Positions 4,237 to 49,646 of a stretch of 64,000 nucleotides of DNA are shown piece by piece. The stretch's first letter is position 1, and each line of letters opens with the position of its first letter. The stretch lies in the sequence record MT366760.1. The stretch is one strand, 5' to 3'. The notes beneath the pieces are model-generated. The model was not told where the DNA came from, made no database searches, and worked only from the letters and a program-made list of their open reading frames with translations. Both the position numbers and the translations under genes were made by a program.

Positions 4237-4245
4237 GCGATGTCC

Positions 4246-4692
4246 TTAATAATCAAATTTGCCGTCGGACTCAAGTACAGTACGCCAGTAACTAAGGGGC
4301 GGTGCTGTATTTGAATCGTCGAAAAACCCTAAGATAGTTTCACAAATTCGTACACGTTCCACTGGACTTCTGACTTCTAAGAAAGCAGGTCCGTACATGG
4401 CGGAAGCAATGTTGCAAGCTTCACGAATTGAACGATTTTGTAAGTTATCTTTGATTATATCACATACTTTATCAATTGACAAATTTTTATCATCAGACTT
4501 CATGTGACGTTTAATTTCACGTAAGTTGTTACGTGCCTTGCGGAGTGCAGCGATTAAGCGACGGTTCATAACCGTACCCATCTCAGCTTCCACGTCAGCA
4601 GTGGCAGACTCAACAATTTCGGGTACATCGGCTTCCATTTCAGCCAGTACCTTGTCTATCTGCATATCTAGGGGGACGCTCTTAATAGCCAT
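4246..4692 (-). CDS. hypothetical protein (148 aa)
   Basis: ORF tightly packed between neighbours; AAGG RBS; CTGTAAA motif 34 nt upstream. Confidence 0.7.
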   Translation of the reverse strand: MAIKSVPLDMQIDKVLAEMEADVPEIVESATADVEAEMGTVMNRRLIAALRKARNNLREIKRHMKSDDKNLSIDKVCDIIKDNLQNRSIREACNIASAMYGPAFLEVRSPVERVRICETILGFFDDSNTAPPLSYWRTVLESDGKFDY

Positions 4693-4725
4693 ATATCGCC
4701 TTTTGTATTAGTTGATACGTGTATA

Positions 4726-4732
4726 TTTACAG
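4726..4732 (-). promoter_or_regulatory. CTGTAAA intergenic motif (candidate phage promoter element)
   Basis: One of ~10 copies in or at the edge of intergenic gaps, mostly oriented toward the downstream gene. Confidence 0.5.
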
Positions 4733-4740
4733 GATTTGCG

Positions 4741-5124
4741 CTATGCTAAACGCTCCTTATTACGCTTCGTTTTGTGCTTTTTTCTAATATGTCCGTGAAG
4801 GTATAAGGAACCATGACATTTAGGATAACACAAAGTTCTCAGGTTTGACTTCTTATCCGTACCGCCTCTAGAGACTGGTTTGATGTGGTCAACTTGTAAG
4901 CACTCTCCTGCTTTAAGTTCAGACTTGTGTCTGCCACACTTCGTACAACAGTAACCATCCCGCTTAAGGATGATTTCGCGTAAGTCACGCCACTCTTTAG
5001 ATTTGGTTGTACCCGCACCACCGTAGGTTGCTCGCTTAATACGAACAACTCCACTTTTATTGCGACGAGGACCACCTGGGTAAAAACGTCTAACTTTGGT
5101 TGGTCTAACTCTCTTCTTAGTCAT
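4741..5124 (-). CDS. HNH endonuclease (McrA-like, Zn-binding)
   Basis: CTKCG...LQVDHIKPVSRGGTDKKSNLRTLCYPKCH is a canonical HNH motif. Confidence 0.85.
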   Translation of the reverse strand: MTKKRVRPTKVRRFYPGGPRRNKSGVVRIKRATYGGAGTTKSKEWRDLREIILKRDGYCCTKCGRHKSELKAGECLQVDHIKPVSRGGTDKKSNLRTLCYPKCHGSLYLHGHIRKKHKTKRNKERLA

Positions 5125-5869
5125 CGAAGAACTTGTCCATCTTTTCCTGTATCTTTATGAAACGTTCTTCAACACCACGACACATCTCTTTAGTTGCGTC
5201 ATCAATTGCACGGATACCTTCGTTTTCACGGTCGGAACGTAAATCACTTTGTAGTGACTTCTTAAGTGCGAACATCTGGTCTATGAATAATTGTCCGAAA
5301 GATTGGAACACTGGTTGAACTACCTTAGTGATAACGGCAGCAGCCATGTTGGACTGAGCATCGTTAGCCTGCATGTCACCAATTAACTCACGTACTTGTG
5401 AGATTAGTGCATTCATAGCATAAAGGTCATTAGCAATACCCTTGTCACGATACTTAGCTTCAGCTTCTGGGATTAAGTCTACTAGAGTCCTAATCATTGA
5501 TACTTGGAACTTAGCGACACCCTTGTCTTTTTCCGCAGCGGACTCAAGCATGTCTTTGATACGCTCGGCATCATCACCGAACAAACTAGCGAGGGACTTT
5601 TTGAATTCCTTTTCGGTCTTCTTGACGTATTTCGGGTCTACTTTAACGTCCTCTTCTACTACAGCTACGGGAAAACCCGAGGATTTTTCGTCCTCAGGTT
5701 CACCGTTGTCGCAGTGCTCACATTCAGGTCGCTTGCGGATAGCTTTGGTGCTGAACCTACGTTTCTTTTCACAATAGATACATAGGCAACCCCATTCGTC
5801 ATCCTCTAATTTCTTAGCAACGCGAAATGAGCCGAGGATAAGACCCTTTTTAATTTTGGTCTTAGCCAT
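5117..5869 (-). CDS. hypothetical protein with N-terminal CxxC..CxxC Zn ribbon and helical C-terminus
   Basis: CIYC and CEHC pairs; overlaps neighbours at start/stop (translational coupling). Confidence 0.7.
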   Translation of the reverse strand: MAKTKIKKGLILGSFRVAKKLEDDEWGCLCIYCEKKRRFSTKAIRKRPECEHCDNGEPEDEKSSGFPVAVVEEDVKVDPKYVKKTEKEFKKSLASLFGDDAERIKDMLESAAEKDKGVAKFQVSMIRTLVDLIPEAEAKYRDKGIANDLYAMNALISQVRELIGDMQANDAQSNMAAAVITKVVQPVFQSFGQLFIDQMFALKKSLQSDLRSDRENEGIRAIDDATKEMCRGVEERFIKIQEKMDKFFDD

Positions 5870-8611: not shown

Positions 8612-10510
8612 CTATATTGTGGGGTTATACTCCTTAGTAAATTCAGTTAACGTGAACTTATCACCAGAGAACCCATCTATTTTCTTATTGGTAGCACCAT
8701 CTTTGTAGACAAGCATAGTCGTCTTACCAGATAGATTACCAACGGTTCCACCTTCTTGCGTAATCCATTCAACTAGTTCAGGGTTACGGAAGCTTGTGAG
8801 TGTTACATGCTGACCACTCATGCAACCATCTTCGTTAACTTCAACTTCTTCTGGTTCTTCTGGCATGTGATATTCAATGCCAGATTTGATAAGCTTTTTC
8901 ATAAACTTCTGGAATGGTTTTAGACCATCGACAAAAGTCTGTGCCGTTTTATTCCAACCACCATTTGCCTTTAAGCGTTCAACCAACTCAGTGTCCTTAG
9001 GTGACAACTCCATTGGGTCGCCCAAACATAGGACAGCGTCTCTGAGTTTAGTGTCACCCATGCCACGACCGAACAGTGCACTCGCTACCATGTAGTCAAC
9101 AATGTCGCCATGCTTGAGTTCCTCAATAGCTCGACGAACGTCCTTAACTTTTGAAGTACCGAAACCGTCAATCTTAATCAAGTTGCTTTCCTTGATTTTA
9201 AGGAACTTAAATATATTGGAGTAACCCTCTTCAACTAACTTGGCTAATGTACCGTGTTTGATACCTTCAACGCCCATAGTAGAAATGAAGTGAGTAAGTT
9301 CCTTAATGATTTGAACGTCAGTCTTAGAGGTTGACACAATATGTACTTCTTCACCATCTTCGTTAGTCGTCCATGTATAATCAAGGTCAGGCATATCCGC
9401 TTTCTTGTTACCTTTAATGACGGACATCACATAGGGTATCACGTCACCAGAACGGATGACTTCAATTGTCGAACCTTTACCTATCTTATTATCAAGGATA
9501 TACTTAGCATTGTGACCAGTAGCATGGTTAACCATGACGCCACTCAACTCAGTTTCTTCTATGATAATTCTAGGGATAAGGTAACCATAACGACTTTGAT
9601 TCCATTCAACCTCTAGCACTTTAACTTGCTTGATTGCATCAGGGTCATGTGCCTTGAAAGCTACTGACCACTCAGGATTACCACTTTTGTTGATTGGGTG
9701 AACTTGGTCTTGGGTTAGAATGATACCATCTAGGGCAAACGCTGACTTCTTACGACGTTTCATCAAGTATTCATATAGAGTGTCTTCGTCTAGCTCCGTG
9801 AACTTCTTGTGTTTAGGTGTGATGAAGCCGCGCTTTTCAAGTTCTTTGAATTGTTTGGATGGTTTCATACGAGGACGTACAATCTCGTAGGCAATTAATG
9901 TAACGTGTTTAGTTAGTGGGTGGATGTCTTTACGCATCGGGTTAGTTAAACCCACGACAGCACCACGAGGGTCGTTATAGTCGTCAGAGAAATGGGAGGT
10001 GTACACTGCGTCTGCTATTTCTAGCTCACCGCGAATTTGCCACCCATCAGGTAATTTACCCATACCACTTATATGGGGTATAAGACGACTAATGTTGTGA
10101 CCCTCAGCACCACTACTACGTTTGTAAGCTGATATCTTTTTACCAGTTCGCTCTAAACCGATTGAGACACCGTCTTCTTTATCAGAGGCTCTCCATGGTC
10201 CTGGGTACTTTTTGGCGTATAGGTCTAGCGCTTTCTGCGTTTTAACCTTATCCATTGAACCCATGTAAAATGGCAGCTCTTCCTTTTCAGCTTTGTCATC
10301 AGATGTACCGACGGCAAGTGCTGATGAATCGGGTTTTCTCTCACGTAGTGCATCTTCGAAAATGTCGTATACGTGGTCGGGTACGAGAGTTTTAGAAGTT
10401 GAGTAATATGCATGTTTGAATTCACGCACGTATTCTTCTAACTTTTTGAGGGAGAGTGAAGCAACAAACTTTTCGGGTTGCTTCAAAATTTTCTTTATAT
10501 CTTTACTCAT
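8612..10510 (-). CDS. ligA: NAD+-dependent DNA ligase
   Basis: KEDG adenylation motif, IRGE, DGII, VAFK, OB fold (WNQSRYGYLIP), HhH repeats, C-terminal BRCT. Start moved to the ATG at 10510 (AAGG RBS). Confidence 0.95.
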   Translation of the reverse strand: MSKDIKKILKQPEKFVASLSLKKLEEYVREFKHAYYSTSKTLVPDHVYDIFEDALRERKPDSSALAVGTSDDKAEKEELPFYMGSMDKVKTQKALDLYAKKYPGPWRASDKEDGVSIGLERTGKKISAYKRSSGAEGHNISRLIPHISGMGKLPDGWQIRGELEIADAVYTSHFSDDYNDPRGAVVGLTNPMRKDIHPLTKHVTLIAYEIVRPRMKPSKQFKELEKRGFITPKHKKFTELDEDTLYEYLMKRRKKSAFALDGIILTQDQVHPINKSGNPEWSVAFKAHDPDAIKQVKVLEVEWNQSRYGYLIPRIIIEETELSGVMVNHATGHNAKYILDNKIGKGSTIEVIRSGDVIPYVMSVIKGNKKADMPDLDYTWTTNEDGEEVHIVSTSKTDVQIIKELTHFISTMGVEGIKHGTLAKLVEEGYSNIFKFLKIKESNLIKIDGFGTSKVKDVRRAIEELKHGDIVDYMVASALFGRGMGDTKLRDAVLCLGDPMELSPKDTELVERLKANGGWNKTAQTFVDGLKPFQKFMKKLIKSGIEYHMPEEPEEVEVNEDGCMSGQHVTLTSFRNPELVEWITQEGGTVGNLSGKTTMLVYKDGATNKKIDGFSGDKFTLTEFTKEYNPTI

Positions 10511-31893: not shown

Positions 31894-32376
31894 TTAGTCG
31901 TCCCACTCATCTTTCTTGCCGCCTTTCTTGCCGCCTTTCTTTTCTTTGGCAGGCTTTTTGTCAGCCTTTTTGTCTTTCTTAGCAGCCGCTTTTTTCTTAG
32001 GTGCTGCTTCTTCTTCAACGTCTAGCTCAGTAATTTGTGCTAGTGCTGCAGGTACGTGATGTACTGCGCCGTCTACGTCTGTTGCTACGATGAATTCACC
32101 TTGAACTTCGAACTCTTCGATTTCGATTGAAGTGTATGGAGTCGCTAGTTCTTGAACTGCTACGAAACCTGAGTCAGCATCACCGTTGCCTTCAGTCAAC
32201 ATAAGGATCTGTTGGCTTGGGATGAAACGACGGTCGCGTTTCTGAGTACGTGGACGAGTGTATTCAACCAATGCACCGCCTTCATCGTGCTCAATGATAG
32301 TTAAACCTTTTGGTGCGAAACCATCATCTACTACGTTAGCTACGGTTGACATGTAAACGGTAAGTGTCTTTGACAT
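31894..32376 (-). CDS. hypothetical protein with Lys-rich low-complexity tail
   Basis: GGAG RBS; strong codon bias; KKAAAKKDKK tail. Confidence 0.75.
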   Translation of the reverse strand: MSKTLTVYMSTVANVVDDGFAPKGLTIIEHDEGGALVEYTRPRTQKRDRRFIPSQQILMLTEGNGDADSGFVAVQELATPYTSIEIEEFEVQGEFIVATDVDGAVHHVPAALAQITELDVEEEAAPKKKAAAKKDKKADKKPAKEKKGGKKGGKKDEWDD

Positions 32377-32544: not shown

Positions 32545-32551
32545 TTTACAG
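32545..32551 (-). promoter_or_regulatory. CTGTAAA motif
   Basis: Immediately after the GNAT stop, upstream of the structured leader of 31894..32376. Confidence 0.5.
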
Positions 32552-32553
32552 AT

Positions 32554-33033
32554 TTACTTAGACTTCGATGAACTTTCTTTATAAGTCATCAACCAAGCGT
32601 CACCTTCAGCGTCATACATTGGGCACAAGTGATTCTTAGTAAAGCCAATTGCTTCATAAACACCGATAGCTCTTTCGTTTTTATCGGCGACATAAAGAAC
32701 TGTTAGGGGTGCAAAGGTAATCGCGTATGCAGTAAGTGCGTAACCCAAACCAAGTCCTTCCCAATCTTTATGAATGAATAAGCTTAGTAAGTGAGCACGC
32801 TTCTTCTCTACACGTAGCGTCAACATTGCTACGACTTCACCGAGACCAGTGCGAACCAAGTATAAGTCATCACCCTCTTCAATTGCGTCTTCGAGATAAG
32901 TGATGGAATCGAGTTCGGGGTCTTCACGAAGTGTTCGTAGTTCATGAATATCTTCGCGTGAACGGATAACGTCAACTAAGAAACCATGTTCGTCGTTAGC
33001 GTTACCCAATATTAGAGGAATGGGTTGTTCCAT
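32554..33033 (-). CDS. GNAT acetyltransferase (RimI-like)
   Basis: LFIHKDWEGLGLGYAL (AcCoA motif A), NERAIGVYEAIGF (motif B). Confidence 0.85.
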   Translation of the reverse strand: MEQPIPLILGNANDEHGFLVDVIRSREDIHELRTLREDPELDSITYLEDAIEEGDDLYLVRTGLGEVVAMLTLRVEKKRAHLLSLFIHKDWEGLGLGYALTAYAITFAPLTVLYVADKNERAIGVYEAIGFTKNHLCPMYDAEGDAWLMTYKESSSKSK

Positions 33034-33038
33034 GTGTG

Positions 33039-34187
33039 TTACTCCGCATCTAATAAGAAGGTATGGTCACATTGTTTACCTTCGAAGTTAGTAGCAACTA
33101 GACGTTCATTACCGTTCTCGTCAGTTATTACTTTAGCGTAATCAGGTTGGATAGGCATCTTACCTAAACCACCAATACCATCCAAAATGAATGTAGGCAT
33201 TGCAGGACCTGATATCCAACCGCGCAACTTGTGAATGATTTCAAGAGTGCGATGATAGTTAACTTGAATGTGACTATTACCTGGAGCAGGATCCATAGTG
33301 TATACGTAATAGGGTCTTACACCATGTGACATAAGTTCCATGAATAGTTCTTTCAAGATTACGGGGTCGTCGTTGACACCTTTCCATAGTACGCTTTGGT
33401 TACCAACAGGAATACCGCCACGGGTCAACATTCGAATATGTTTGATGAATAGTGGTGTAATCTCCTTCGGGTGATTTACCTGAATATTAACTAGAGTCAC
33501 ATCGTGCTTGTGCAGGATATCTACTAGCTCTTGGTCAATACGAGTAGGAAGATGTACGGGTAGTCGTGTGCCGATGCGTAGGATCTTTAAGTCTGGACGC
33601 GCTTCACGAATCATACCAAGTATCTTATCCAATTTAGCATTCGGGAACATTAAAGGGTCACCACCGGATAGTAGTACGTCTTCAATGTTCTTGTTTTCAC
33701 GTAACCATTCAACACCGTTACGAATCTGAGTCATATCAATATGAGCATCAGGGTCTAGAACAATACGCTTTCTTGTACAATGACGGCAGAGTGCAGCACA
33801 TATTGTGTTCATAAGGAACAGTACGCGCTGAGGATAACGGTGTGTGATAGAAGTCCCTGGGATTTCCATGTGATGCTCACCTAACTGGTCACCTTCTTCG
33901 TGTGGTGCGATGTGTCGTTCTGCTTCAGTCGGTAGGAACTGTAAGCGGATTGGACAATTAGGGTCATTTTCATCCATCAGTTGAGCAAGGTATGGCGTAA
34001 TTGCCACTTCAGACTCTTGGTAGAATGAATCATCAACACGAGGAACATTATTCATCACTAGCTCTGCGTGTCCGTTTGTTTTAAGTCGGCGGTTATAGAC
34101 CTTTGTCCATGGAGTGTTCTCCACGTCGTAATTCATAAGCTCTTCACGTGTAGCGAAAGGAGCCCCTGTCATTGCAAGTAGTGACAT
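33039..34187 (-). CDS. kamA: lysine 2,3-aminomutase (radical SAM/PLP, KamA/AblA/EpmB family)
   Basis: HRYPQRVL, CAALCRHCTRKR, LLSGGDPL, RIGTR, NQSVLWKGVND, PYYVYTMD, PTFILDGIGGLGK (PLP Lys). Confidence 0.9.
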   Translation of the reverse strand: MSLLAMTGAPFATREELMNYDVENTPWTKVYNRRLKTNGHAELVMNNVPRVDDSFYQESEVAITPYLAQLMDENDPNCPIRLQFLPTEAERHIAPHEEGDQLGEHHMEIPGTSITHRYPQRVLFLMNTICAALCRHCTRKRIVLDPDAHIDMTQIRNGVEWLRENKNIEDVLLSGGDPLMFPNAKLDKILGMIREARPDLKILRIGTRLPVHLPTRIDQELVDILHKHDVTLVNIQVNHPKEITPLFIKHIRMLTRGGIPVGNQSVLWKGVNDDPVILKELFMELMSHGVRPYYVYTMDPAPGNSHIQVNYHRTLEIIHKLRGWISGPAMPTFILDGIGGLGKMPIQPDYAKVITDENGNERLVATNFEGKQCDHTFLLDAE

Positions 34188-34240
34188 TGTTCGTATCCTT
34201 GTTGTGTTAGTGGGGCTGCAATGAGCCCCTTATTATCAAT

Positions 34241-36334
34241 TTACAATAATAGTAGTTTAGGTGCAAACTCGTGATTGTGGTCGAATAGCATACCAATATG
34301 AGGTTCTTCACGGAACGCACCGTACAACACGTTCTGTTGACGTGCTACGTGGATGGCTAGAACGTAAGCATCTTGTGGTGAAGTGTCTGAGTAACCTTGA
34401 CCGATACCGTAACGGGTGTTCGAATCTGCGATTGCGTAGTCAGCACCACAGAATGAAGCAGCATCAATCAAGTCGAAACCACAATCGTCTTCGGAGAAGT
34501 AGTTGAATAGTGATCTTGTTACACAGTAGTCTGCTTCACCACCACCGCAAAGCGGTACGGTATAGATAGACACACCACATGAGAAGCGAGCACGCCATTC
34601 AGGGTCGATGTGTTTCTTAGCTTCTAAGTGTTCGAGTACTACGGGTAATGGACGACCCATCTGACGGGTTAGTGTTGAGTTGTTTGAACAACCCATTCTG
34701 ACCATCCATTCAGTGAAGTAAGGAACGTCATCAACTACCATAAAGCTTGCGTCAATCCAACCGAACAGACCATCTACTTCTTTGTGAAGTGAACGCATCT
34801 TCTCGGCTAGTTCTTCTACGATTGGATAGTTTTGAATCTTGGTATCGTGCAGCGTTGTAGTATCGCCACCTTTACCACCCGTGTCATTGTGCATCAGCTT
34901 ATTAACTTCCCACAAGATACACATTGGTTGTACGTGGTCTTCGTTAATCAGGAAGCTAACGTTGAATTCGTTGTCTCCGCGACCTAGATATTGTTCGATG
35001 AATAGCGCACCACCATTCAAGAGGTTTGGTAATGTTAATTCGAAACCATCTTTATCGAAAATATCAATGAAGTGAGTCTTCAGATATTTAACTGCGATCT
35101 TATCCGTTGGGATACGGTCTTTTTTCGCGTGCCAATCTTCTAGGGACTTGACGACGATTGATGCGGGTACGTTAAAACCAATTGCTTCTGCACATTTGTG
35201 ACCGAATACACGGTTACGTTCCAACGCACGGGCGTCCTGAGTATGGAAGTGAGTCAGGTAGTCGAGTAACGGTGGTACAATTTCTTCGTTGTAGCCCAAC
35301 GTTGAGAAGTATTGACCGCGTTCGTAATCACCTACACGTTCCATCAGCTCGATGAATTCAGGGTCATCAAAGTCTACACAGTTAGGTAGTTCTGATGGTT
35401 CGATGTCGGGGAACAACTCACGTAGTTGGTGCATGTTAACTTGAGGAATGGTAACTAGTTGTACGTCAGCAATACCTTCTGAGGTATTACAATTGTAACG
35501 TGTTGCACTAGTACCACCTGAACCTTCTTCTATTCGAAGGTGGACAATTTTATCGCAGTTGATACCGTCTTCTACCAATAGGCGAGCCTGAGCGATGTAA
35601 TCGTATTGCTTGCGTAGTCGAAGTTTCGGCATGTTCTGGGGTTCACTACGTTCATTAACTTCTGCGTTACCAAGAGGCATCATGAAGTCAACGTATTCAC
35701 GGGAATCTAGACCTTGCCAAATATCAACCCATTCCTGAGTGTCATAAATAGGTCGGGATAGCTTGTAACCCGCAAGTACGAAGTTACTTTGATCTTCGTC
35801 ACTTAAATTAGCAAAGAACAACGTAAACATCCCATCATCTTTTTCAACATGTGCCACATGTGAGATATGTGATGTGAGCATCGGTACAAGTTTGGTCTGC
35901 GCAAATGGAATTGAAGGATACGTTGCTTCATCACGTAGCCCTTGGAGTGTGATAAAGTCAGCAGGTTCCATTGGTCGTAGGTTGTAGAGTGGTGAACCAC
36001 TAGACCAACCAGATATCATTTGCTGCGACTCGTAAATAATAGGGTCACCTGAGTGAACGGTGTAGGGTGCCAGACGTTGTTGGTAGATAGTCGGAAAGTC
36101 TGGGATTGTTGATACCCCACCGAATTGTGCAAAGTGGACTACGCAATCTGATAGCCCATTGTTGTAGATCAAAGTTGTAGGGAACTGAGCTAGGTAGTCC
36201 GATAGCAGTGGGATAAAATAATCACCTCTGACGTAACGACCAGGACTGCTCAAGTAATTCGCTGTTGTCACACGTTTGCCTGTGAAGTCTAATTTCTTCA
36301 CCATGTCAAATAGTGGGTTTAATAATGATTTCAT
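34241..36334 (-). CDS. PurD-like ATP-grasp amide ligase with ~330 aa unknown N-terminal region
   Basis: LERNRVFGH, IAVK, FIEQYLG, EVNKLMHNDTGGKGG, FTEWMVRMG parallel the PurD ATP-grasp motifs. Start moved to 36334 (GAGG RBS). Confidence 0.7.
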   Translation of the reverse strand: MKSLLNPLFDMVKKLDFTGKRVTTANYLSSPGRYVRGDYFIPLLSDYLAQFPTTLIYNNGLSDCVVHFAQFGGVSTIPDFPTIYQQRLAPYTVHSGDPIIYESQQMISGWSSGSPLYNLRPMEPADFITLQGLRDEATYPSIPFAQTKLVPMLTSHISHVAHVEKDDGMFTLFFANLSDEDQSNFVLAGYKLSRPIYDTQEWVDIWQGLDSREYVDFMMPLGNAEVNERSEPQNMPKLRLRKQYDYIAQARLLVEDGINCDKIVHLRIEEGSGGTSATRYNCNTSEGIADVQLVTIPQVNMHQLRELFPDIEPSELPNCVDFDDPEFIELMERVGDYERGQYFSTLGYNEEIVPPLLDYLTHFHTQDARALERNRVFGHKCAEAIGFNVPASIVVKSLEDWHAKKDRIPTDKIAVKYLKTHFIDIFDKDGFELTLPNLLNGGALFIEQYLGRGDNEFNVSFLINEDHVQPMCILWEVNKLMHNDTGGKGGDTTTLHDTKIQNYPIVEELAEKMRSLHKEVDGLFGWIDASFMVVDDVPYFTEWMVRMGCSNNSTLTRQMGRPLPVVLEHLEAKKHIDPEWRARFSCGVSIYTVPLCGGGEADYCVTRSLFNYFSEDDCGFDLIDAASFCGADYAIADSNTRYGIGQGYSDTSPQDAYVLAIHVARQQNVLYGAFREEPHIGMLFDHNHEFAPKLLLL

Positions 36335-36336
36335 AA

Positions 36337-37479
36337 TTATGCCTCGTCGCCTAATACTACGACACTTTCTGGAAGTTCCCAACCGTTTTTCTCTGAGTAG
36401 AGCGGTGGTGTTAAGTAACCTGGGTTTTCACGACACACACAGATTGTCGTGTTCGTGTTATTGTCATTTACAATAAGGCGCTTGTATGTCTCGATACTTT
36501 CACCACCTGACACATTGGTACGGCAAGTTGGGTCAAGATAAAGCACTGGATGTTTTGAGTCTTCAATGTAGTACTTGACCATACTACCTAGCATTAGTGC
36601 GCCTACATTGTGGTGTGACTTATCACGAACATTAGCTTGGAAGAACGCGGTTACTTCTTTGTTTTCCGGATTGAAACGATTGACGAAGGAACCAATGGAA
36701 ATGATTTCATTAGTTTCTTTGTCAGTTACCACACAGAACTGAGTAGTACCCTTAGGCATATTGACGACACATGCCCACGCCCACATGGATTGGAGTAGAG
36801 CGTATTCGAATTCTAAGTAATCGGGGTACGACTTACGTAGTAGTTCGATGGTGCGTTCTTGAAGCGTACGTATATCTAGGAAACCACCACCATTGTATGA
36901 ATGAAGGTTACCGTGGAAGTATTCATCAAAGATATCTACGTGGTATCGGTCTTGGTTAAGTGCTTGACGAACTTTGTAACGGCGCTTCTTAGTCAAGGAT
37001 GCTAGGTACTCGTCGAATGTCTCGTGGTTTAAATTAGCCACGGGACTATTCAACCAAAGTAAGTTCTCTGATTTGTATTCGTGTGCATCAGATAACGTCA
37101 CTGTCTCTGTTGATAGCATGTTGTAGCCGTGAGAACCAAGTACTTCGAGTAGTGCTTTGCATGATTCTTCACAAACCAAGTCAGCTTGTGTGTAAGGTAA
37201 ATATGGATGACATAACACGTGTGATAGTGGTAGTTCCCATTCGGAGTCTTTACGTTCAGTACTGTGGACGAATGGACTAGGATTAAAACCCAAACCCGCT
37301 AAACGTCCCTCAGTAATCATAGTAATAGGAGTGTTAAGGGTAGCACCACAATTGAATTGACGTAGGTACGTGTCAAATGTGGAAATAACTTCACTGTTAA
37401 GTTCTGGAGTAAGTGTTGAGGAATAACCATGAAGTTTACACCAGTTGTATAGGTATTCTGTTATTGATACTGTTTTCAT
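36337..37479 (-). CDS. FemAB-like / Acetyltransf_6 GNAT-fold acyl- or aminoacyl-transferase
   Basis: TFDEYLASLTKKRRYKVRQAL signature; VGALMLGSMVKY. Confidence 0.65.
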   Translation of the reverse strand: MKTVSITEYLYNWCKLHGYSSTLTPELNSEVISTFDTYLRQFNCGATLNTPITMITEGRLAGLGFNPSPFVHSTERKDSEWELPLSHVLCHPYLPYTQADLVCEESCKALLEVLGSHGYNMLSTETVTLSDAHEYKSENLLWLNSPVANLNHETFDEYLASLTKKRRYKVRQALNQDRYHVDIFDEYFHGNLHSYNGGGFLDIRTLQERTIELLRKSYPDYLEFEYALLQSMWAWACVVNMPKGTTQFCVVTDKETNEIISIGSFVNRFNPENKEVTAFFQANVRDKSHHNVGALMLGSMVKYYIEDSKHPVLYLDPTCRTNVSGGESIETYKRLIVNDNNTNTTICVCRENPGYLTPPLYSEKNGWELPESVVVLGDEA

Positions 37480-37487
37480 TTTTAGTC

Positions 37488-38510
37488 CTATAGTGAAGTA
37501 CGGTCTTTGTTGTAACCGTGGTCACAAGCTTCAGGGATTAAGTCAAGTAGTTGTTGTGGGATGTCATTGTTGAATTGAATACCCTTATGGTATTTCTCCT
37601 CTTCACACCACATGCGCTTCCAATCATAGTAACCTACACCAAAGTTGTAGTATTTACAACCAAGTGCCTTAGCCAATAAGTATCCGTGGTAGAGTAGTAC
37701 GTTACCAATGTTGTTACCGACAGTACGGCGCGAGAAGTCCCAGTATAATTCTTCACCATTATCAGTTACGGAAAATACGGCGAGACCTGAACAGTCGCCT
37801 AGGTCAATTTCAGCAGTTATCCAACGGTCGAAATTGAATCCAGTGAAGAAGTTTAGGAAAAGTAATTGATCTTCGGATACTGTGTGATGTTTACCCGTAC
37901 TTTCCCAATACTTAAGGAAGTCTTCTTTGTAGCGTTCACAATCTGCGGCAATTTCATCAGTGTGATGTGGATGAGATACTTCTACACCTGCATTACGTAA
38001 TGTCGTAACGTCTACGGCATTGTACGCCTTGTTGATAATTGGTAATTGTGGGGTTTCAACAAGCTTCTTGAATGGGCGGTAGAAGCGTTTTAGGTTTTTC
38101 TCTTCAACGTTCATACGTAATGTCATCAGACCATGGTCGTGAGTAGACATTCCGAATTCTTCTAGGTTGAAACCTTTTGTCCAAAAGTTAACGTAGTCGT
38201 CAGCGGAGGACGATTCCCCCATGATGATTGTAATGAATTTAGTCTTGTCGTGCTCTATTTCATCACGAACAATCTGAATAGGCATTACGTTGTTATGGGA
38301 ATCACGCAGGAACACGGGTTCCGTACATCGGTAGTATTTAGAACCTTCGATTTCTTCGGCAGTTAGATAATAAAGACCACTATAACTAGGAATCTTCATA
38401 CCGCCTAAAGAATCAGTGCCGAGTTTATTAGTGTACCATTGTTGATCTACAACGTGACCGAAAGGTTCTTCAGCAATGTCACCATGTTTATTCATTACTT
38501 TAACTAACAT
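37488..38510 (-). CDS. second FemAB-like / Acetyltransf_6 GNAT-fold transferase
   Basis: IGNVLLYHGYLLAKALGCKYYNFGVGYYDWKRMW C-terminal signature. Confidence 0.6.
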   Translation of the reverse strand: MLVKVMNKHGDIAEEPFGHVVDQQWYTNKLGTDSLGGMKIPSYSGLYYLTAEEIEGSKYYRCTEPVFLRDSHNNVMPIQIVRDEIEHDKTKFITIIMGESSSADDYVNFWTKGFNLEEFGMSTHDHGLMTLRMNVEEKNLKRFYRPFKKLVETPQLPIINKAYNAVDVTTLRNAGVEVSHPHHTDEIAADCERYKEDFLKYWESTGKHHTVSEDQLLFLNFFTGFNFDRWITAEIDLGDCSGLAVFSVTDNGEELYWDFSRRTVGNNIGNVLLYHGYLLAKALGCKYYNFGVGYYDWKRMWCEEEKYHKGIQFNNDIPQQLLDLIPEACDHGYNKDRTSL

Positions 38511-39204
38511 TGTCTAACGCTCCCTGACTGTCCGTGCATTGTGAACAAATACCACAAGGTGGGTAGAACTCACAACTAATACGGTTTGAATAATCTTCAC
38601 CAAATGTACGACCTAGTGCAACTACTTGTTCTTTTGACATGTGCATTAGGGGTGTATCAATGACGAATGGTTTAGAGAACGATTGGAATAACAGTTCGTT
38701 CATCGTCTTAACGAAGTGAGGATTAATATCTGCACCGCGAGTTGCACCATTGGTACGAGTACCTACATCTAACTCAGGGTCATTTAGCTGAATACCAAAC
38801 GTCAGTTTATTACAACCTGCGTAGATTGCTTCGATTGATGCTTGTAGGAGGAATGCAGCATTACGACCTTCCAACCAAAACCAGTCAGGATGCTCAGCTA
38901 GTGAGTCACAATCTTCAGTTAGAGAATCACGGGAGAAACCTTGCTTTGGTTTGTACCCTTCATGGAAGACACCGAAGTCTGAGATATCGTGTCCGTTGCG
39001 TACCATGATTTCAGGATACGCAACTTCTAAGACGCGAGTAGAACAACCCCAGAAGTGTGCATAGTACTCCATGATGCGTTGTTGTTCTTCAAATACAGCT
39101 TGTCCATAGTTAACGAGGATAAGCATTTTAAGTTTGCCAGTGGCATTGATTAGGTGACCCGCGACGATGCTGTCAATCCCACCTGAGAATAATAGTGCGT
39201 TCAT
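38500..39204 (-). CDS. divergent QueC-like PP-loop ATP pyrophosphatase
   Basis: LLFSGGIDS, NYGQ, EGRNAAFL, TPLMHMSKEQVV, C-x5-CGICSQC; lacks the YPDC motif. Confidence 0.8.
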   Translation of the reverse strand: MNALLFSGGIDSIVAGHLINATGKLKMLILVNYGQAVFEEQQRIMEYYAHFWGCSTRVLEVAYPEIMVRNGHDISDFGVFHEGYKPKQGFSRDSLTEDCDSLAEHPDWFWLEGRNAAFLLQASIEAIYAGCNKLTFGIQLNDPELDVGTRTNGATRGADINPHFVKTMNELLFQSFSKPFVIDTPLMHMSKEQVVALGRTFGEDYSNRISCEFYPPCGICSQCTDSQGALDNVS

Positions 39205-39234
39205 TATAGTGCTCCTTTAGTTCACTATATTTAT

Positions 39235-39241
39235 TTTACAG
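39235..39241 (-). promoter_or_regulatory. CTGTAAA motif
   Basis: Directly after the queC terminator, 31 nt before the QueC-like ATG (AAGGAG RBS). Confidence 0.55.
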
Positions 39242-39244
39242 AAT

Positions 39245-39273
39245 AAAAATGGGCAGCAAGAGCCACCCATTTT
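39245..39273 (-). terminator. intrinsic terminator after queC
   Basis: AAAATGGGTGGC-TCTT-GCTGCCCATTTTT on the minus strand. Confidence 0.65.
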
Positions 39274-39283
39274 AAATTAGCGT

Positions 39284-40090
39284 TTAGCAGTCTTCTGGAC
39301 TAACGAATTCACTGTCAGACCCACCTTCAACTACCCACTGGTAGCGAGCACGTGCAGGGTCATCAATACCCGCTTCATCAAAACCACGCTTACGTAACAA
39401 GCAGCTATGACAAGAGCCACAACCTAGAACAACGTTACCGTTTTCACCACGAGTGAAATCTTTGCCGTTGTAACAGGTATGGGTAAAGCTGATAGCTTCC
39501 ATACATTCATCACCTAGCTCTTGTGCAAGTTCGACAGTAGCCTTCTTAGACAAGTGCATTAGTGGGGTTGTGATTTTAATCAAGTGATCTTCACCGAAGT
39601 CTTCTTCAAGGAACAATGCTGCATTAGTAGCTGCCTGTAACTTGTCGATGAAAACTTGGCGGCAATCTGGGTAACCACCGAAATCTTCTTCACAAACACC
39701 GGTAACAATGTGACGCAGACGATGTACGTAAGCACGGTTGCTAGCAATCGTAAGGAATACTAAGTTACGTGATGGAACAAATGTATTTTCCAAACCACCA
39801 GGGAGTGAGTCAGCATCTGCATATTGCTCAACCTTTTCGTTGCGGTTAGTCAGTGGGCTTGTACCCTGTAGGATATCGTGACCCAAAGCGATGATCTCAA
39901 ACGGAACTTGCGCACGGTCTGCAATTTTACGAGCCAATATTGTTTCAGTGATATGGCGTTGACCATAGTTGAAACAGATAGCACGAACGTTCTCACGACC
40001 ATATTCACGAATTGCCCAATGTAGACAAGTCGTTGAGTCTTGTCCGCCTGATAGTACAACGACTGCACCTTCTTTCATTTCATTGCTCAT
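39284..40090 (-). CDS. queC: 7-cyano-7-deazaguanine (preQ0) synthase
   Basis: VVVLSGGQDSTTCL, FNYGQRH, TFVPSRN, GGYPDCR, PLMHLSK, THTCYNG, GCGSCHSCLLRKRGF. Confidence 0.95.
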   Translation of the reverse strand: MSNEMKEGAVVVLSGGQDSTTCLHWAIREYGRENVRAICFNYGQRHITETILARKIADRAQVPFEIIALGHDILQGTSPLTNRNEKVEQYADADSLPGGLENTFVPSRNLVFLTIASNRAYVHRLRHIVTGVCEEDFGGYPDCRQVFIDKLQAATNAALFLEEDFGEDHLIKITTPLMHLSKKATVELAQELGDECMEAISFTHTCYNGKDFTRGENGNVVLGCGSCHSCLLRKRGFDEAGIDDPARARYQWVVEGGSDSEFVSPEDC

Positions 40091-40101
40091 TTTGTATTCC
40101 C

Positions 40102-41109
40102 TTACTGTTCGATGTGGCTTAGGTCGTCTTCTTCGTCTTCTTCATCTTCTTCGCGGATTTCAAGTAACGCGTTACGGAGTGAACAGATTAGAGACGTGCT
40201 GCTTAGATTTAGGTAGTCTGAATAGAACTTAACTTCATTCACGAACTTAACCTGTGGAATGATACCGCCTGCCCATAGGTTGTTATGTGTTAGTTCGTCA
40301 AACGCTGCTTTAATCGCTAGGTTATAGAAGTCACAGTAAACAACAATAGTATCATGTTCATGTTTAGAGAAGTAATCAACAAAGGTCTTTTTCAGACGCC
40401 ATTCGTACGGGATACCCGAATCATAGTGTGGCATAATAGCCCAAAGATCTTGAGGTACGATACCCAGTACGCCAGTCGCATTCGCAATGTAAGTATCTGA
40501 AGAACAACCAGTTGCTTCAAGGCAGTCAATAACTGCTGAGTGCATTGGTGCAGGGTACGGTTTGTCGGGTGCGCATGGAACAAGAACCAAATTACGTTTG
40601 GTTGGTGTATAATCGTCAAGAGTTTCGAAGTAATCCAAAACTTCTTTACGATGGAATGAACCATTGTTAGTAATGATGAACTCTTTACGCTCATGTTGTA
40701 GGTTCTTAGTGAGTTGTGGAAGTTTGGTCTCCCACTGCATATCACTTTTCCATAGTGCGTCCACCAACTCTGGGCGGAATCCACACACAACTTCGATAGA
40801 GGTACGGTCTAGGAATGGATAACGGCAGAACTGAGTTGACTTGTCTACGTTAAGTAAACGAGAAACTTGTTCGTCGTGCTCAAAGTGAACTTGAGGTGTA
40901 CTACAATCCGCACCTAAATAGTTAAGTAGTGGAACCCAAGAAGCGGGTGGTCGAGTAACCGTCCACGGCTCCGAAGACTCTGCTACCACTTTGAAGATAT
41001 CTAGGTATGAACCATAGCGATCTTCGTATCGACCACCCGATGGCATTTGGGATAAGTCGATGTGACGGTCTTCTTTATCAATGACCGTTTCTGAGGAGTT
41101 TACTGTCAT
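40102..41109 (-). CDS. archaeosine synthase ArcS/TgtA2 core (DUF5591)-like protein
   Basis: RKEVLDYF..YTPTKRNLVLVPCAPDKPY..H and GVLGIVPQDL..PHYD match the recalled ArcS core motifs PCSxxKPY and LGLVPREL..HYD. Confidence 0.7.
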   Translation of the reverse strand: MTVNSSETVIDKEDRHIDLSQMPSGGRYEDRYGSYLDIFKVVAESSEPWTVTRPPASWVPLLNYLGADCSTPQVHFEHDEQVSRLLNVDKSTQFCRYPFLDRTSIEVVCGFRPELVDALWKSDMQWETKLPQLTKNLQHERKEFIITNNGSFHRKEVLDYFETLDDYTPTKRNLVLVPCAPDKPYPAPMHSAVIDCLEATGCSSDTYIANATGVLGIVPQDLWAIMPHYDSGIPYEWRLKKTFVDYFSKHEHDTIVVYCDFYNLAIKAAFDELTHNNLWAGGIIPQVKFVNEVKFYSDYLNLSSTSLICSLRNALLEIREEDEEDEEDDLSHIEQ

Positions 41110-41160: not shown

Positions 41161-42483
41161 TTAGTTTACAGAATAATGTGAGTATGTTTCTTCCCACGCT
41201 AAAAATTTATTTATTCCCCTTAGAAATAGTATTACGGTGATGTCACCGATACCTTTCTTATTCATAAGCCTATTATACATCTGACCACGTGTAAGGGAAG
41301 CGGGTTCATCACCTAGGTCTTTGAATATCTGAGTGAGTTTAGCGGGTGGGATGGTAGCTCCCTCTTGTGTGACGAAAGCACCAGACACAAGTGCACGCTG
41401 TGTTAATGTCAGCCTTCTAACTGAGTTTTGGAGTGCGTTGTAGAGTATACGAATTGTCGTAGTACCAAAGCCGTTTAGCTTAGCTAAGTCTTCTTCGGTG
41501 GCATCCATTAAAGCAAAGATGTCACTATATTTACGTGATATTTCACTAACCTTGGCATCAGAAATGTTACGTATCGAAAGCACGGAGGATAGTGCGTAAT
41601 TTAAATGGGCTTTTTTCCTACCGTCACAGTCTAAGTTATAGCAGAACAGTCGATGGTCATCTTCAAATATGTCACCACGGCACGACGGACACTTCTTAAG
41701 ATTCTCGGTTGCGTGTGGTGAGTGATATACCTTTTCTATTGACGGTGGTAAGTTCTTAGGTTTGTTAACGTTCAGCATGATTGCTGTACCAACACCAACA
41801 CCAAGGTCATGAAGCACCTTGCATGATTGCAGTGGTATGTTGCTGTAGGACGTATGATTAGTCGTCAGCTTTTCTATTTCCAAGGTTGGTCGGATTTCAC
41901 CAGTACGCTGAACCTTATAACGAATGTGGGTTACGACAGTTACTAGATGTGTCTTATCTTTCTTCTTCCAGTACCAATAGAAATTACCATTAGCGACGAC
42001 CACACCCTTGCGTGCTTTGACGTTCACCAATACATCTTTTAGTTTTGAACTGGAAACGGAACAACGCAGGGGTGATAAATGGTCAGCGGGGATGAAGCCA
42101 TCCTTAACTGCTGAAAGTTCATTACTATGCAGGAATATGAAGTCAGTATCTCCAGATTTCAAACCGCGCATAACCTCTTTAGGTTTAGAAGCACTTATCG
42201 GGTTCACTATCTGAGTAGTTAGGATTCCCAACACTTGTCCTTTTGGATGCGCAATGCGGTTGGGGATAAGACCGTTATCAACTATTCTATGGAAGTCTAT
42301 GGCTTTGAGTCTATTGTATTTCTTGTGGTCGTAAGCTATCCAAGCACCAATAGGTGTGTGTGCTTCATACACCACTTTAATAGGTACACCGCTCAACCCA
42401 GGATATACATGATAATGAACCACCTTAGACTTTTCTAATTCGCGTTGGTGGTTCTTATTGAATTTCTTAATTTGAGAGTTCAT
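41161..42483 (-). CDS. catalytically degenerate NAD-ligase paralogue (OB fold, C4 Zn finger, HhH)
   Basis: VQRTGEIRP, CPSC..FCYN.DC, HhH GFGTTT; KxDG region reads PGLSGVP. Start moved to 42483 (GGAGG RBS). Confidence 0.7.
   Translation of the reverse strand: MNSQIKKFNKNHQRELEKSKVVHYHVYPGLSGVPIKVVYEAHTPIGAWIAYDHKKYNRLKAIDFHRIVDNGLIPNRIAHPKGQVLGILTTQIVNPISASKPKEVMRGLKSGDTDFIFLHSNELSAVKDGFIPADHLSPLRCSVSSSKLKDVLVNVKARKGVVVANGNFYWYWKKKDKTHLVTVVTHIRYKVQRTGEIRPTLEIEKLTTNHTSYSNIPLQSCKVLHDLGVGVGTAIMLNVNKPKNLPPSIEKVYHSPHATENLKKCPSCRGDIFEDDHRLFCYNLDCDGRKKAHLNYALSSVLSIRNISDAKVSEISRKYSDIFALMDATEEDLAKLNGFGTTTIRILYNALQNSVRRLTLTQRALVSGAFVTQEGATIPPAKLTQIFKDLGDEPASLTRGQMYNRLMNKKGIGDITVILFLRGINKFLAWEETYSHYSVN
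41165..41171 (-). promoter_or_regulatory. CTGTAAA motif
   Basis: In the last codons of 41161..42483, 56 nt before the ArcS-like ATG. Confidence 0.45.
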
Positions 42484-43628: not shown

Positions 43629-43673
43629 ATTCTGTAAAGTTGGTGTAGTTTACCCATCATTAAAGACAAGAAG

Positions 43674-49561: not shown

Positions 49562-49646
49562 GGTGTGGTAGTTCAACTGGATAGAACAGCAGGGTGCACC
49601 GTTAACAGACTGCCAGTTATTGGTTCAAAGCCAATCCACACCACCA
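49562..49646 (+). tRNA. tRNA-like gene (85 nt) with an 8-nt-expanded anticodon loop; identity uncertain
   Basis: Acceptor GGTGTGG/CCACACC + A + CCA; D arm GTTC/GAAC; T arm ATTGG-TTCAAAG-CCAAT; anticodon stem GCAG/CTGC. Confidence 0.8.

Follow-up and report, generated by a model that had tools for sequence, protein, structure and literature searches.

An island of vB_VcorM_GR7B genes that may build an amino-acid-decorated 7-deazaguanine for phage DNA

Lytic phages that place 7-deazaguanines in their DNA combine a precursor pathway (FolE, QueD, QueE and QueC) with an enzyme of the tRNA-guanine transglycosylase (TGT) family (DpdA or DpdA2), and ArcS2 or Gat-QueC leads on to 2'-deoxyarchaeosine (dG+) (Hutinet 2019, Cui 2023). 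The tested phages with a pathway to 7-cyano-7-deazaguanine (preQ0) and DpdA carry the base in DNA (PMC6884629), and dG+ in DNA results from the joint action of DpdA2 and ArcS2, a phage DUF5591 protein (PMC10516641). Here we analyse a gene cluster of the Vibrio phage vB_VcorM_GR7B (MT366760; hereafter GR7B), a 207,758-bp myovirus of Vibrio coralliilyticus, that shares with these systems the precursor pathway, a TGT-family enzyme, a DUF5591-only protein and a lytic phage as its carrier, and adds a second QueC, a protein of a new family (g4), a PurD-like ATP-grasp ligase, a Fem-like enzyme, a KamA-type aminomutase and a GNAT acyltransferase. To our knowledge, eight 7-deazaguanine derivatives are found in phage DNA, all with small one-carbon side chains; the enzymes added in GR7B belong neither to these derivatives nor to the enzymes described for them (DpdL, DpdM and DpdN). 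We consider it somewhat probable that the island builds an amino-acid-decorated 7-deazaguanine and that the phage's own TGT/DpdA-like enzyme places this base in phage DNA. Most likely, a clade of phages of ~200-230 kb has a modular hypermodification island of which these eight genes are the form present in GR7B, and the modified base presumably serves to blunt restriction and other DNA-targeting defences.

Several systems outside phage 7-deazaguanine modification also resemble parts of this set. In the archaeal ArcS-RaSEA route lysine is added to preQ0 in tRNA and then cleaved by a radical S-adenosylmethionine (SAM) enzyme; ArcS reportedly attaches the lysine to the preQ0 nitrile. That route and GR7B have in common a DUF5591 core that contains PC-X3-KPY, as well as the involvement of a radical SAM enzyme and of an amino acid related to lysine. 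However, the GR7B DUF5591 protein is without PUA or N-terminal TGT-like domains, its radical SAM protein is an aminomutase of the KamA type that uses pyridoxal phosphate (PLP) and has free-lysine residues rather than a RaSEA, and its substrate is probably DNA or the free base. A QueC-like PP-loop enzyme and a TGT-family protein are likewise features of Cap9/Cap10, from the type IV cyclic oligonucleotide-based antiphage signaling system (CBASS), and of QatC. Cap9 employs the QueC mechanism to couple AMP-activated 7-carboxy-7-deazaguanine (CDG) to an amine, which yields an N-substituted 7-amido-7-deazaguanine with N9 free (10.1101/2025.04.06.647259). In contrast to these systems, the GR7B set is phage-encoded, lies outside a defence island, is without CD-NTase or Qat partners, and has a canonical QueC as well as nitrile-modifying and peptide-bond-forming enzymes alongside.

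There is also precedent for amino-acid-derived groups made on DNA bases after replication, as in Mom (N6-carbamoylmethyladenine), N-alpha-glycinylthymidine and related modifications. Mom, with its GNAT fold and aminoacyl-tRNA donor, is a precedent for the Fem-like protein g5: it modifies DNA using Gly-tRNA, so that a tRNA-dependent GNAT can act on DNA (PMC13219725). In GR7B, unlike these cases, the base would be 7-deazaguanine rather than A or T and several ligation steps would be involved, and the cluster holds no 5-hydroxymethyldeoxyuridine kinase or PLP lyase set of the thymidine hypermodifications. FemX transfers an amino acid from aminoacyl-tRNA onto a lysine side-chain amine, and PurD-type ligases join an amino-acid carboxylate to an amine. 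The fold of g5 resembles that of FemX/FemABX and Sbb17, here in the context of nucleobase modification and not peptidoglycan; g6 is like PurD (glycinamide ribonucleotide synthetase) throughout its C-terminal part but carries an extra N-terminal domain of ~240 amino acids (aa) and stands outside purine synthesis. The preliminary description of this DNA knew of no phage pathway pairing QueC/ArcS with KamA and an ATP-grasp ligase, and we found none with either in the literature searched: no full text links phage 7-deazaguanine or QueC with aminomutase, ATP-grasp or Fem-like enzymes, none discusses the cluster in GR7B, Pseudomonas putida phages or Xanthomonas phages, and the papers on the P. putida and Xanthomonas phages do not mention deazaguanine. 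The kind of system is a known one, phage 7-deazaguanine DNA modification, but it would be substantially new in its chemistry and enzymology, and an amino-acid (beta-lysine) side chain on 7-deazaguanine is most likely a DNA modification of an undescribed kind.

The window, a stretch of 64,000 nucleotides, matches GR7B with 100% identity as MT366760 62001-126000, and subtracting 62000 from a record coordinate gives the window coordinate used below. Eight co-oriented, tightly packed genes had been noticed at 32554-41109, and open reading frame (ORF) calling bears this out, with the interval filled exactly by eight minus-strand ORFs whose intergenic gaps from g1 to g8 are 11, 79, -11 (an overlap), 8, 2, 53 and 5 nt. 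GenBank gives product names for only three of the eight (QueC twice and lysine 2,3-aminomutase once). Six of the eight family assignments of the preliminary description hold, five of them (g1, g2, g3, g7 and g8) by direct family searches. The features are as follows.

40102-41109, minus strand: g1, DUF5591-only ArcS-like protein (ArcS2-type), 335 aa; Pfam DUF5591, NCBIfam ArcS alpha
39284-40090, minus strand: g2, canonical QueC (CDG to preQ0), 268 aa; Pfam QueC, TIGR00364
39246-39273, minus strand: terminator-like hairpin between g2 and g3, then a T-run and TATTCTGTAAAATAAATATAGT
38500-39204, minus strand: g3, divergent QueC paralogue, 234 aa; Pfam QueC; overlaps g4 by 11 nt
37488-38510, minus strand: g4, new protein family with 11 relatives, 340 aa; partner of g3
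36337-37479, minus strand: g5, FemX-like tandem-GNAT fold, 380 aa; AlphaFold2 (AF2) model and Foldseek
34241-36334, minus strand: g6, PurD-like ATP-grasp ligase, 697 aa; family profile against PDB
33039-34187, minus strand: g7, KamA-family radical SAM/PLP aminomutase, 382 aa; radical SAM and LAM_C domains
32554-33033, minus strand: g8, small GNAT N-acyltransferase, 159 aa; Pfam Acetyltransf_1 6e-11

The first three genes suggest how a 7-deazaguanine could be made and then derivatised. The ArcS/DUF5591-like assignment made earlier for g1 is upheld by Pfam DUF5591 (E 2e-6; 28.2 bits against a gathering cut-off of 26) and NCBIfam ArcS alpha (9e-12). Its motif VPCAPDKPYPAPMH retains PC-X3-KPY, and a comparison of PCAPDKPYPAPMHS with the full C1 motif (PC-X3-KPY-X2-S-X2-H) shows this part intact but Ser and His either displaced or exchanged for other residues; in the active ArcS2 of phage nt-1 the C1 motif is slightly degenerated (PMC10516641). 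Homologues of g1 are present in two metagenomic contigs, L016 and L023, and in Xanthomonas phage PhiXhv-12; tblastn at E 0.01 retrieved no phage nt-1 protein. g1 is predicted to add an amine to the preQ0 nitrile and so form an amidine. Both QueC calls of the preliminary description also stand. The canonical enzyme, g2, exceeds the equivalog cut-off of TIGR00364 (185.1 bits against 150.3; Pfam QueC 2e-60), and g3 is a divergent member of the Pfam family (Pfam QueC 2.5e-17, 63.5 bits; PP-loop SGGIDS; C-terminal Cys cluster) that lies below the same cut-off (52 against 150.3 bits). The best PDB match of g3 is Cap9 (9nto_B; 1e-6, 31.7 bits), ahead of QueC (3bl5; 2e-4, 24.2 bits); it scores 45 bits on the Cap9-type model of PADLOC against 63 bits on Pfam QueC, and has no CD-NTase partner. 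In the related phage GR11A it is the most conserved gene of the cluster (92% identity). By analogy with Cap9, the predicted reaction of g3 is adenylation of a deazaguanine carboxylate followed by its coupling to an amine, and the divergent QueC may be best read in this light, as a second entry route beyond the scheme first put forward.

The window itself had shown no dpdA, folE, queD or queE, and the preliminary description left the target of the pathway open for that reason. The full genome encodes counterparts of all four outside the window: FolE (Pfam 1e-52), a QueD-like PTPS protein (3e-9), a QueE-like radical SAM protein (PHROG 1.7e-52) and GR7B_00174, a TGT/DpdA-like protein of 538 aa. 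Because GR7B has these genes, and because those for the TGT-like protein, FolE and QueD adjoin the cluster in the viral contig L008, the caveat is resolved toward a nucleic-acid target. No QueF is annotated in the GR7B genome, and no search aimed at it was made. Within the TGT-like family the catalytic and zinc motifs (DSGGFQ, LD, SDxS and CxCPxC...H) are invariant in four lineages. Archaeosine TGT (1iq8, 9e-5) is the sole significant PDB match of GR7B_00174; in that sequence search no other TGT-family chain passed E 1, and the protein gave no PUA domain match. The family was found at the BLAST level in 20 records only of the phage collection, all of ~195-260 kb, and in every complete clade genome examined. 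Its gene is surrounded by replication and recombination genes (primase, single-stranded DNA-binding protein (SSB), sigma factor and RecA) and lies within a conserved block with sigma factor, RecA and QueD. An acyl carrier protein gene (MT366760 152570-152905) is located three genes upstream of the TGT-like gene; the gene after acpP, GR7B_00172, was considered as a pathway part and rejected, as it is a backbone "peptidase" (PHROG 2.8e-53).

The same two enzymes could be read differently. In a scenario of nucleobase-protein or -peptide conjugation, g3 with g4 would put CDG on a protein N-terminal amine and the TGT-like protein would handle the conjugate as Cap10 does, with a phage or host protein as the target. 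Cap9 is, after all, the closest solved structure to g3, type IV CBASS pairs a QueC-like with a TGT-like protein, and a Lys-rich histone-like protein (31894-32376) comes after the cluster in five lineages. We nevertheless regard this scenario as unlikely, although it survives better than the other alternatives: a canonical QueC and DUF5591 or Gat-QueC are present too and would be unneeded for Cap9-type chemistry, the TGT-like family keeps all of its catalytic and zinc residues and matches archaeosine TGT, and g3 scores no better on the Cap9-type model than on Pfam QueC. As for the Lys-rich protein (160 aa, minus strand), it has a Lys/Ala-rich, histone-H1-like tail and follows the cluster in GR7B, GR11A, the P. 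putida phage Aura and the contigs L009 and L016, its L009 relative giving a weak Pfam HC2 match. It could be a conserved neighbour or a functional partner, that is, a DNA-binding protein or a modification target.

We return to incorporation into DNA, the reading we favor, and to the enzymes that would decorate the base. The preliminary description took both g4 and g5 to be FemAB-like, and in the case of g4 this was not borne out. Its match to Acetyltransf_6 is sub-threshold (E 0.097), its AF2 model (predicted local distance difference test (pLDDT) 35) is too poor for structure search, and neither BLAST nor profile comparison relates it to g5 (hhalign probability 0.4%). With no significant Pfam, PDB or profile-profile match, g4 is taken here to represent a new family. 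No more than 11 relatives, making 12 members in all, came out of an exhaustive profile search of 1.84 billion representatives, and a word-index homology search found the GR11A orthologue only; pattern scans of IMG/VR and of GTDB genomes gave no relatives, which is weak evidence of absence as such scans depend on short peptides. The order g3 then g4 is seen in GR7B, GR11A, L016, L023 and L021 and is invariant wherever the two are separate genes, while in contig L015 they are joined: protein P0017 (ENA ERZ28635597 scaffold_5650, 3929-5518) is a fusion of a QueC-like domain (Pfam 3e-17) to g4. The fusion gene is preceded by another QueC-like gene.

For g5 the FemAB-like designation is supported at the level of the fold. 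Its AF2 model (predicted TM-score (pTM) 0.68, pLDDT 62) is confident for residues 145-320, the C-terminal domain, and the top Foldseek matches are FemX structures 1xe4 and 7z6a (E 2.6e-5 to 1e-4, probability 1.0, TM-score 0.33-0.47), followed by the aminoacyl-tRNA-dependent peptide synthase Sbb17 (9wqw, 4.5e-4) and then other tandem GNATs. There is no direct sequence match for g5 and no detectable sequence similarity to Fem proteins, and a pattern scan of IMG/VR, again dependent on short peptides and weak as evidence of absence, gave no relatives. The family has eight members, and jackhmmer connects g5 with a PhiXhv-12 protein bearing Pfam Acetyltransf_6. From the model, g5 is predicted to be an aminoacyl-tRNA-dependent aminoacyl transferase. 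The PurD-like ATP-grasp assignment of g6 became clear from its family. On its own the sequence (with the GenBank start) has no direct Pfam match and only a hint of PurD (E 0.49), but a six-sequence family profile matches PurD 2yw2 with E 4.5e-19 over residues 52-415 of 424 and has ten PurD structures in all below 1e-8, and relatives in other contigs match Pfam GARS_A; g6 thus consists of an unassigned N-terminal domain and a complete PurD-like ATP-grasp. A word-index homology search returned the GR11A orthologue only, and pattern scans of IMG/VR and JGI metagenomes, subject to the same short-peptide limit and so weak evidence of absence, returned no relatives. This ligase is predicted to join a carboxylate to an amine.

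The last two genes were correctly recognised as encoding a KamA and a small GNAT (g8; Pfam as listed). Alignment of g7 with the lysine 2,3-aminomutase 2A5H (E 1e-73) shows that CxxxCxxC (CAALCRHCTR) and the equivalents of R134, D293 (D299), D330 (D336) and K337 (K343) are all conserved. The best NCBIfam model is that of AblA-type lysine 2,3-aminomutase (2e-94); g7 is below the AblA equivalog cut-off (TIGR03820, 316.7 against 525.4 bits) and above that of the KamA family (TIGR00238, 231.8 against 199.2). Our reasoning that its substrate is a free basic amino acid is that the aspartates for the lysine epsilon-amine, Arg134, the PLP lysine and CxxxCxxC are retained. We predict from these residues that g7 is an L-lysine 2,3-aminomutase making beta-lysine, L-lysine being the simplest substrate. 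A role for KamA as an analogue of RaSEA was rejected, in view of the retained residues for the epsilon-amine and carboxylate of free lysine. A KamA-type gene followed by a GNAT gene resembles the ablA-ablB arrangement, but no AblB model is among the NCBIfam matches of g8, and the two genes are not a conserved pair: KamA occurs without the GNAT in the P. putida phages and L008, and the GNAT without KamA in L016, L023 and PhiXhv-12. An ablAB osmolyte pair was rejected on these two grounds. L016 also has relatives of g8; in PhiXhv-12 and L023 such relatives are joined to an Acetyltransf_6 domain.

The families of this cluster recur, in shuffled order, in nine lineages made up of GR11A, nine P. 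putida phages, Xanthomonas phages and six metagenomic contigs.

Phage GR11A: all eight genes, syntenic, 47-92% amino-acid identity
Nine P. putida phages (Aura etc.): two QueC paralogues, ATP-grasp (38% identity), g5 (28%), KamA (51%), other unknowns
IMG/VR viral contig L008: FolE, DUF7487, TGT-like, QueC-like ... ATP-grasp ... KamA ... RecA, QueD
Metagenomic contig L016: ATP-grasp, g5 twice, g8-type GNAT, DUF5591, QueC, QueC-like, g4 (seven of the eight families)
L009: Gat-QueC, QueC-like, QueC, g4-like, ATP-grasp, g5
L021 and L023: further permutations
L015: QueC-like::g4 fusion on one contig
Xanthomonas phage PhiXhv-12: L014 8724-18681, the same as PV764601 115039-124996; phages of ~227 kb

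Co-occurrence in nine lineages is a linkage far beyond chance, and two gene fusions are seen, QueC-like::g4 and Fem-like (Acetyltransf_6)::g8-type GNAT. The conservation, the shuffled order and the fusions lend strong support to our view that the cluster is a functional unit. The sequences indicate a core of QueC, QueC-like, g4, ATP-grasp and Fem-like enzymes. As a rule there is also an amidine-forming enzyme, DUF5591 or Gat-QueC; among L009, L021, L023 and PhiXhv-12, Gat-QueC is found in place of DUF5591 or beside it. KamA, in contrast, does not belong to the core as first supposed: it is an accessory module of three lineages and is absent from four of the nine, and the GNAT is an accessory of four. 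The TGT-like protein of L008 has 32% identity to that of GR7B (E 3e-71). In PhiXhv-12 the island encodes a Leu/Phe-tRNA-protein-transferase homologue, the Acetyltransf_6::GNAT fusion, g5-like and g4-like proteins, Gat-QueC, a DUF5591-like protein from which the catalytic motif is gone, an oxidoreductase, a PIG-L deacetylase and a glycosyltransferase, which suggests a glycosylated or aminoacylated deazaguanine variant. Some further proteins accompany the cluster in relatives. The A9 family (~265-325 aa, no database match) does so in four lineages (L007 16175-18042; L009 6550-7527; L021 3130-4047 and 5130-5927; L023 3366-4295) and is absent from GR7B; a second unknown family, with a member of 329 aa in Aura and three paralogues in L008, shows the same pattern; and homologous intein-containing proteins stand beside the cluster in L008 (11165-12580) and L016 (2208-4295), with Pfam Intein_splicing and, in L016, LAGLIDADG.

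This pattern bears on a second alternative, still a little less likely than protein conjugation, in which the genes are merely co-located: g1-g3 would make the known dPreQ0, dG+ or dADG (the deoxynucleosides of preQ0, archaeosine and 7-amido-7-deazaguanine), and g4-g8 would do something unrelated, such as making the osmolyte N-epsilon-acetyl-beta-lysine or carrying out aminoacyl transfer to the cell wall or to proteins. That ATP-grasp, Fem-like, g4 and GNAT proteins accompany the QueC pair in nine lineages with varying order, and that g4 is fused to a QueC-like domain, speaks against it, even though the phage nt-1 ArcS2 does yield plain dG+ (PMC10516641). The order KamA then GNAT recalls ablA-ablB, but each occurs without the other and g8 matches no AblB model. 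Similarly, the hairpin that parts g1-g2 from g3-g8 has to be set against L016, where g1-g4 overlap by 4 nt each. Of all the rivals, it loses the most ground here, owing to the fusions and to the co-occurrence in shuffled order.

Both elements said to split the cluster into g1-g2 and g3-g8, a terminator and a CTGTAAA motif, are indeed present, with CTGTAAA following the hairpin at 39241-39235 on the minus strand; the region is 89% identical in GR11A and the stem is retained. As the overlapping g1, g2, g3 and g4 of L016 are without a hairpin-type break, we view the split as a regulatory detail and not a functional boundary. CTGTAAA was dropped as an enriched motif, the heptamer occurring 14 times in the window against 15 expected. 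The longer form tattCTGTAAA is also found ahead of g1 and of a plus-strand helicase gene at 43674. Motifs of this type are at 39235-39241, 41165-41171 and 43632-43638, 30-60 nt upstream of g3, g1 and the helicase gene, and a fourth copy (32545-32551) is directly downstream of g8, ~170 nt upstream of the Lys-rich protein gene. The motif may be a phage promoter element; a sigma-like protein is among the products of this genome. The gene immediately upstream of the cluster in GR7B and GR11A, and with 28% identity also in the P. putida phages, is annotated 'ligA' (41161-42483, ORF call to 42531, minus strand). Of NAD-dependent ligase it has only the OB-fold and helix-hairpin-helix part (PHROG profile positions 304-554), and its N-terminal ~190 aa are unassigned; another DNA ligase gene is annotated at 8612-10510. 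The P. putida cluster occupies the same backbone locus (LigA-like gene ... Lys-rich protein, topoisomerase II), and the LigA-like gene may be a DNA-binding accessory or merely backbone synteny.

Taken together, the gene assignments would fit the following pathway, of which we infer the product, the order of steps and the target. FolE and the QueD-like and QueE-like proteins would make CDG, which canonical QueC (g2) would convert to preQ0. The side chain would start by one of two routes: (i) ArcS-like g1 would turn the preQ0 nitrile into an amidine by addition of an amine, much as archaeal ArcS acts with lysine, or (ii) g3 with g4 would, in the manner of Cap9, join AMP-activated CDG to an amine and so yield an N-substituted 7-amido-7-deazaguanine. 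In GR7B, GR11A, the P. putida phages and L008, beta-lysine for incorporation would come from KamA; PurD-like g6 would form a further amide bond between a carboxylate and an amine; Fem-like g5 would transfer an amino acid from aminoacyl-tRNA onto a free amine; and GNAT g8 would acylate an amine as a cap. In the most economical product, beta-lysine plus one or more other amino acids would lengthen the C7 substituent, which may be N-acylated, and the TGT-like enzyme would install the decorated base in DNA. The example given in the preliminary description, preQ0-beta-Lys extended and then acetylated, is pure conjecture as an exact product.

The product could instead be a peptidyl 7-deazapurine made during infection as a free small molecule. 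Enzymes such as KamA, ATP-grasp ligases and Fem-like proteins that depend on tRNA typically belong to natural-product pathways, and Sbb17, among the best structural matches of g5, was solved with streptothrisamine. We think this improbable, in that a TGT-family base-exchange enzyme is found in every complete clade genome examined and adjoins the cluster in L008, no exporter or self-resistance gene was seen in the clusters, and tested phages with the preQ0 pathway and DpdA have the base in DNA (PMC6884629). Least probable of all is the placing of a decorated base, similar to queuosine or archaeosine, in the tRNAs of the infected host, for although TGT, ArcS and QueC are classically tRNA-modification enzymes and archaeosine TGT is the only significant PDB match of the TGT-like protein, g1 is the DUF5591 core alone, the TGT-like protein has no PUA match, its gene lies among those for primase, SSB, sigma factor and RecA, and the GR7B genome has no ordinary tRNA gene. 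ARAGORN does report a tRNA-like gene with an abnormal two-base anticodon at ~49562-49646 of the window (plus strand; L001 37009-37093), and in GR11A the same RNase HI gene is followed by an annotated tRNA-Cys.

Several points weigh against a decorated 7-deazaguanine in phage DNA, the reading we prefer. The case is known from genes alone, for GR7B and every relative. No fold could be assigned to g4, and the g5 model is only moderately confident (pLDDT 62; TM-score to FemX 0.33-0.47). The TGT-like protein has no BLAST-level likeness to phage records outside the clade (20 matching records), and its specificity for DNA rather than tRNA or protein has genomic context as its only basis; in GR7B, it and the CDG-pathway genes are 40-75 kb from the cluster. 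With KamA absent from four of the nine lineages, and two more contigs too short to tell, beta-lysine is not essential to the chemistry of the family. Furthermore, the need for both a QueC and a QueC-like enzyme is not explained.

A wider claim, which we put forward tentatively and which falls a little short of probable, is that this clade of large phages, with Vibrio, Pseudomonas, Xanthomonas and uncultured hosts, carries variable islands that build aminoacyl- or peptidyl-7-deazaguanines in DNA, containing beta-lysine in GR7B, by means of a Cap9-like QueC paralogue with g4, a PurD-like ligase and tRNA-dependent Fem-like transferases. GR7B and the P. putida phages are cultured, so the prediction is directly accessible. 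If true, it would supply the first case of a purine analogue in DNA that bears an amino acid, as well as of beta-lysine in a nucleic acid, and would extend natural DNA chemistry. It would also give a function to at least two uncharacterised families, g4 and A9, and place Cap9-type QueC chemistry, which to date is known from bacterial defence only, in phages. For the phages themselves, it would probably mean a new route of restriction escape, and with it a new target for modification-dependent defences.

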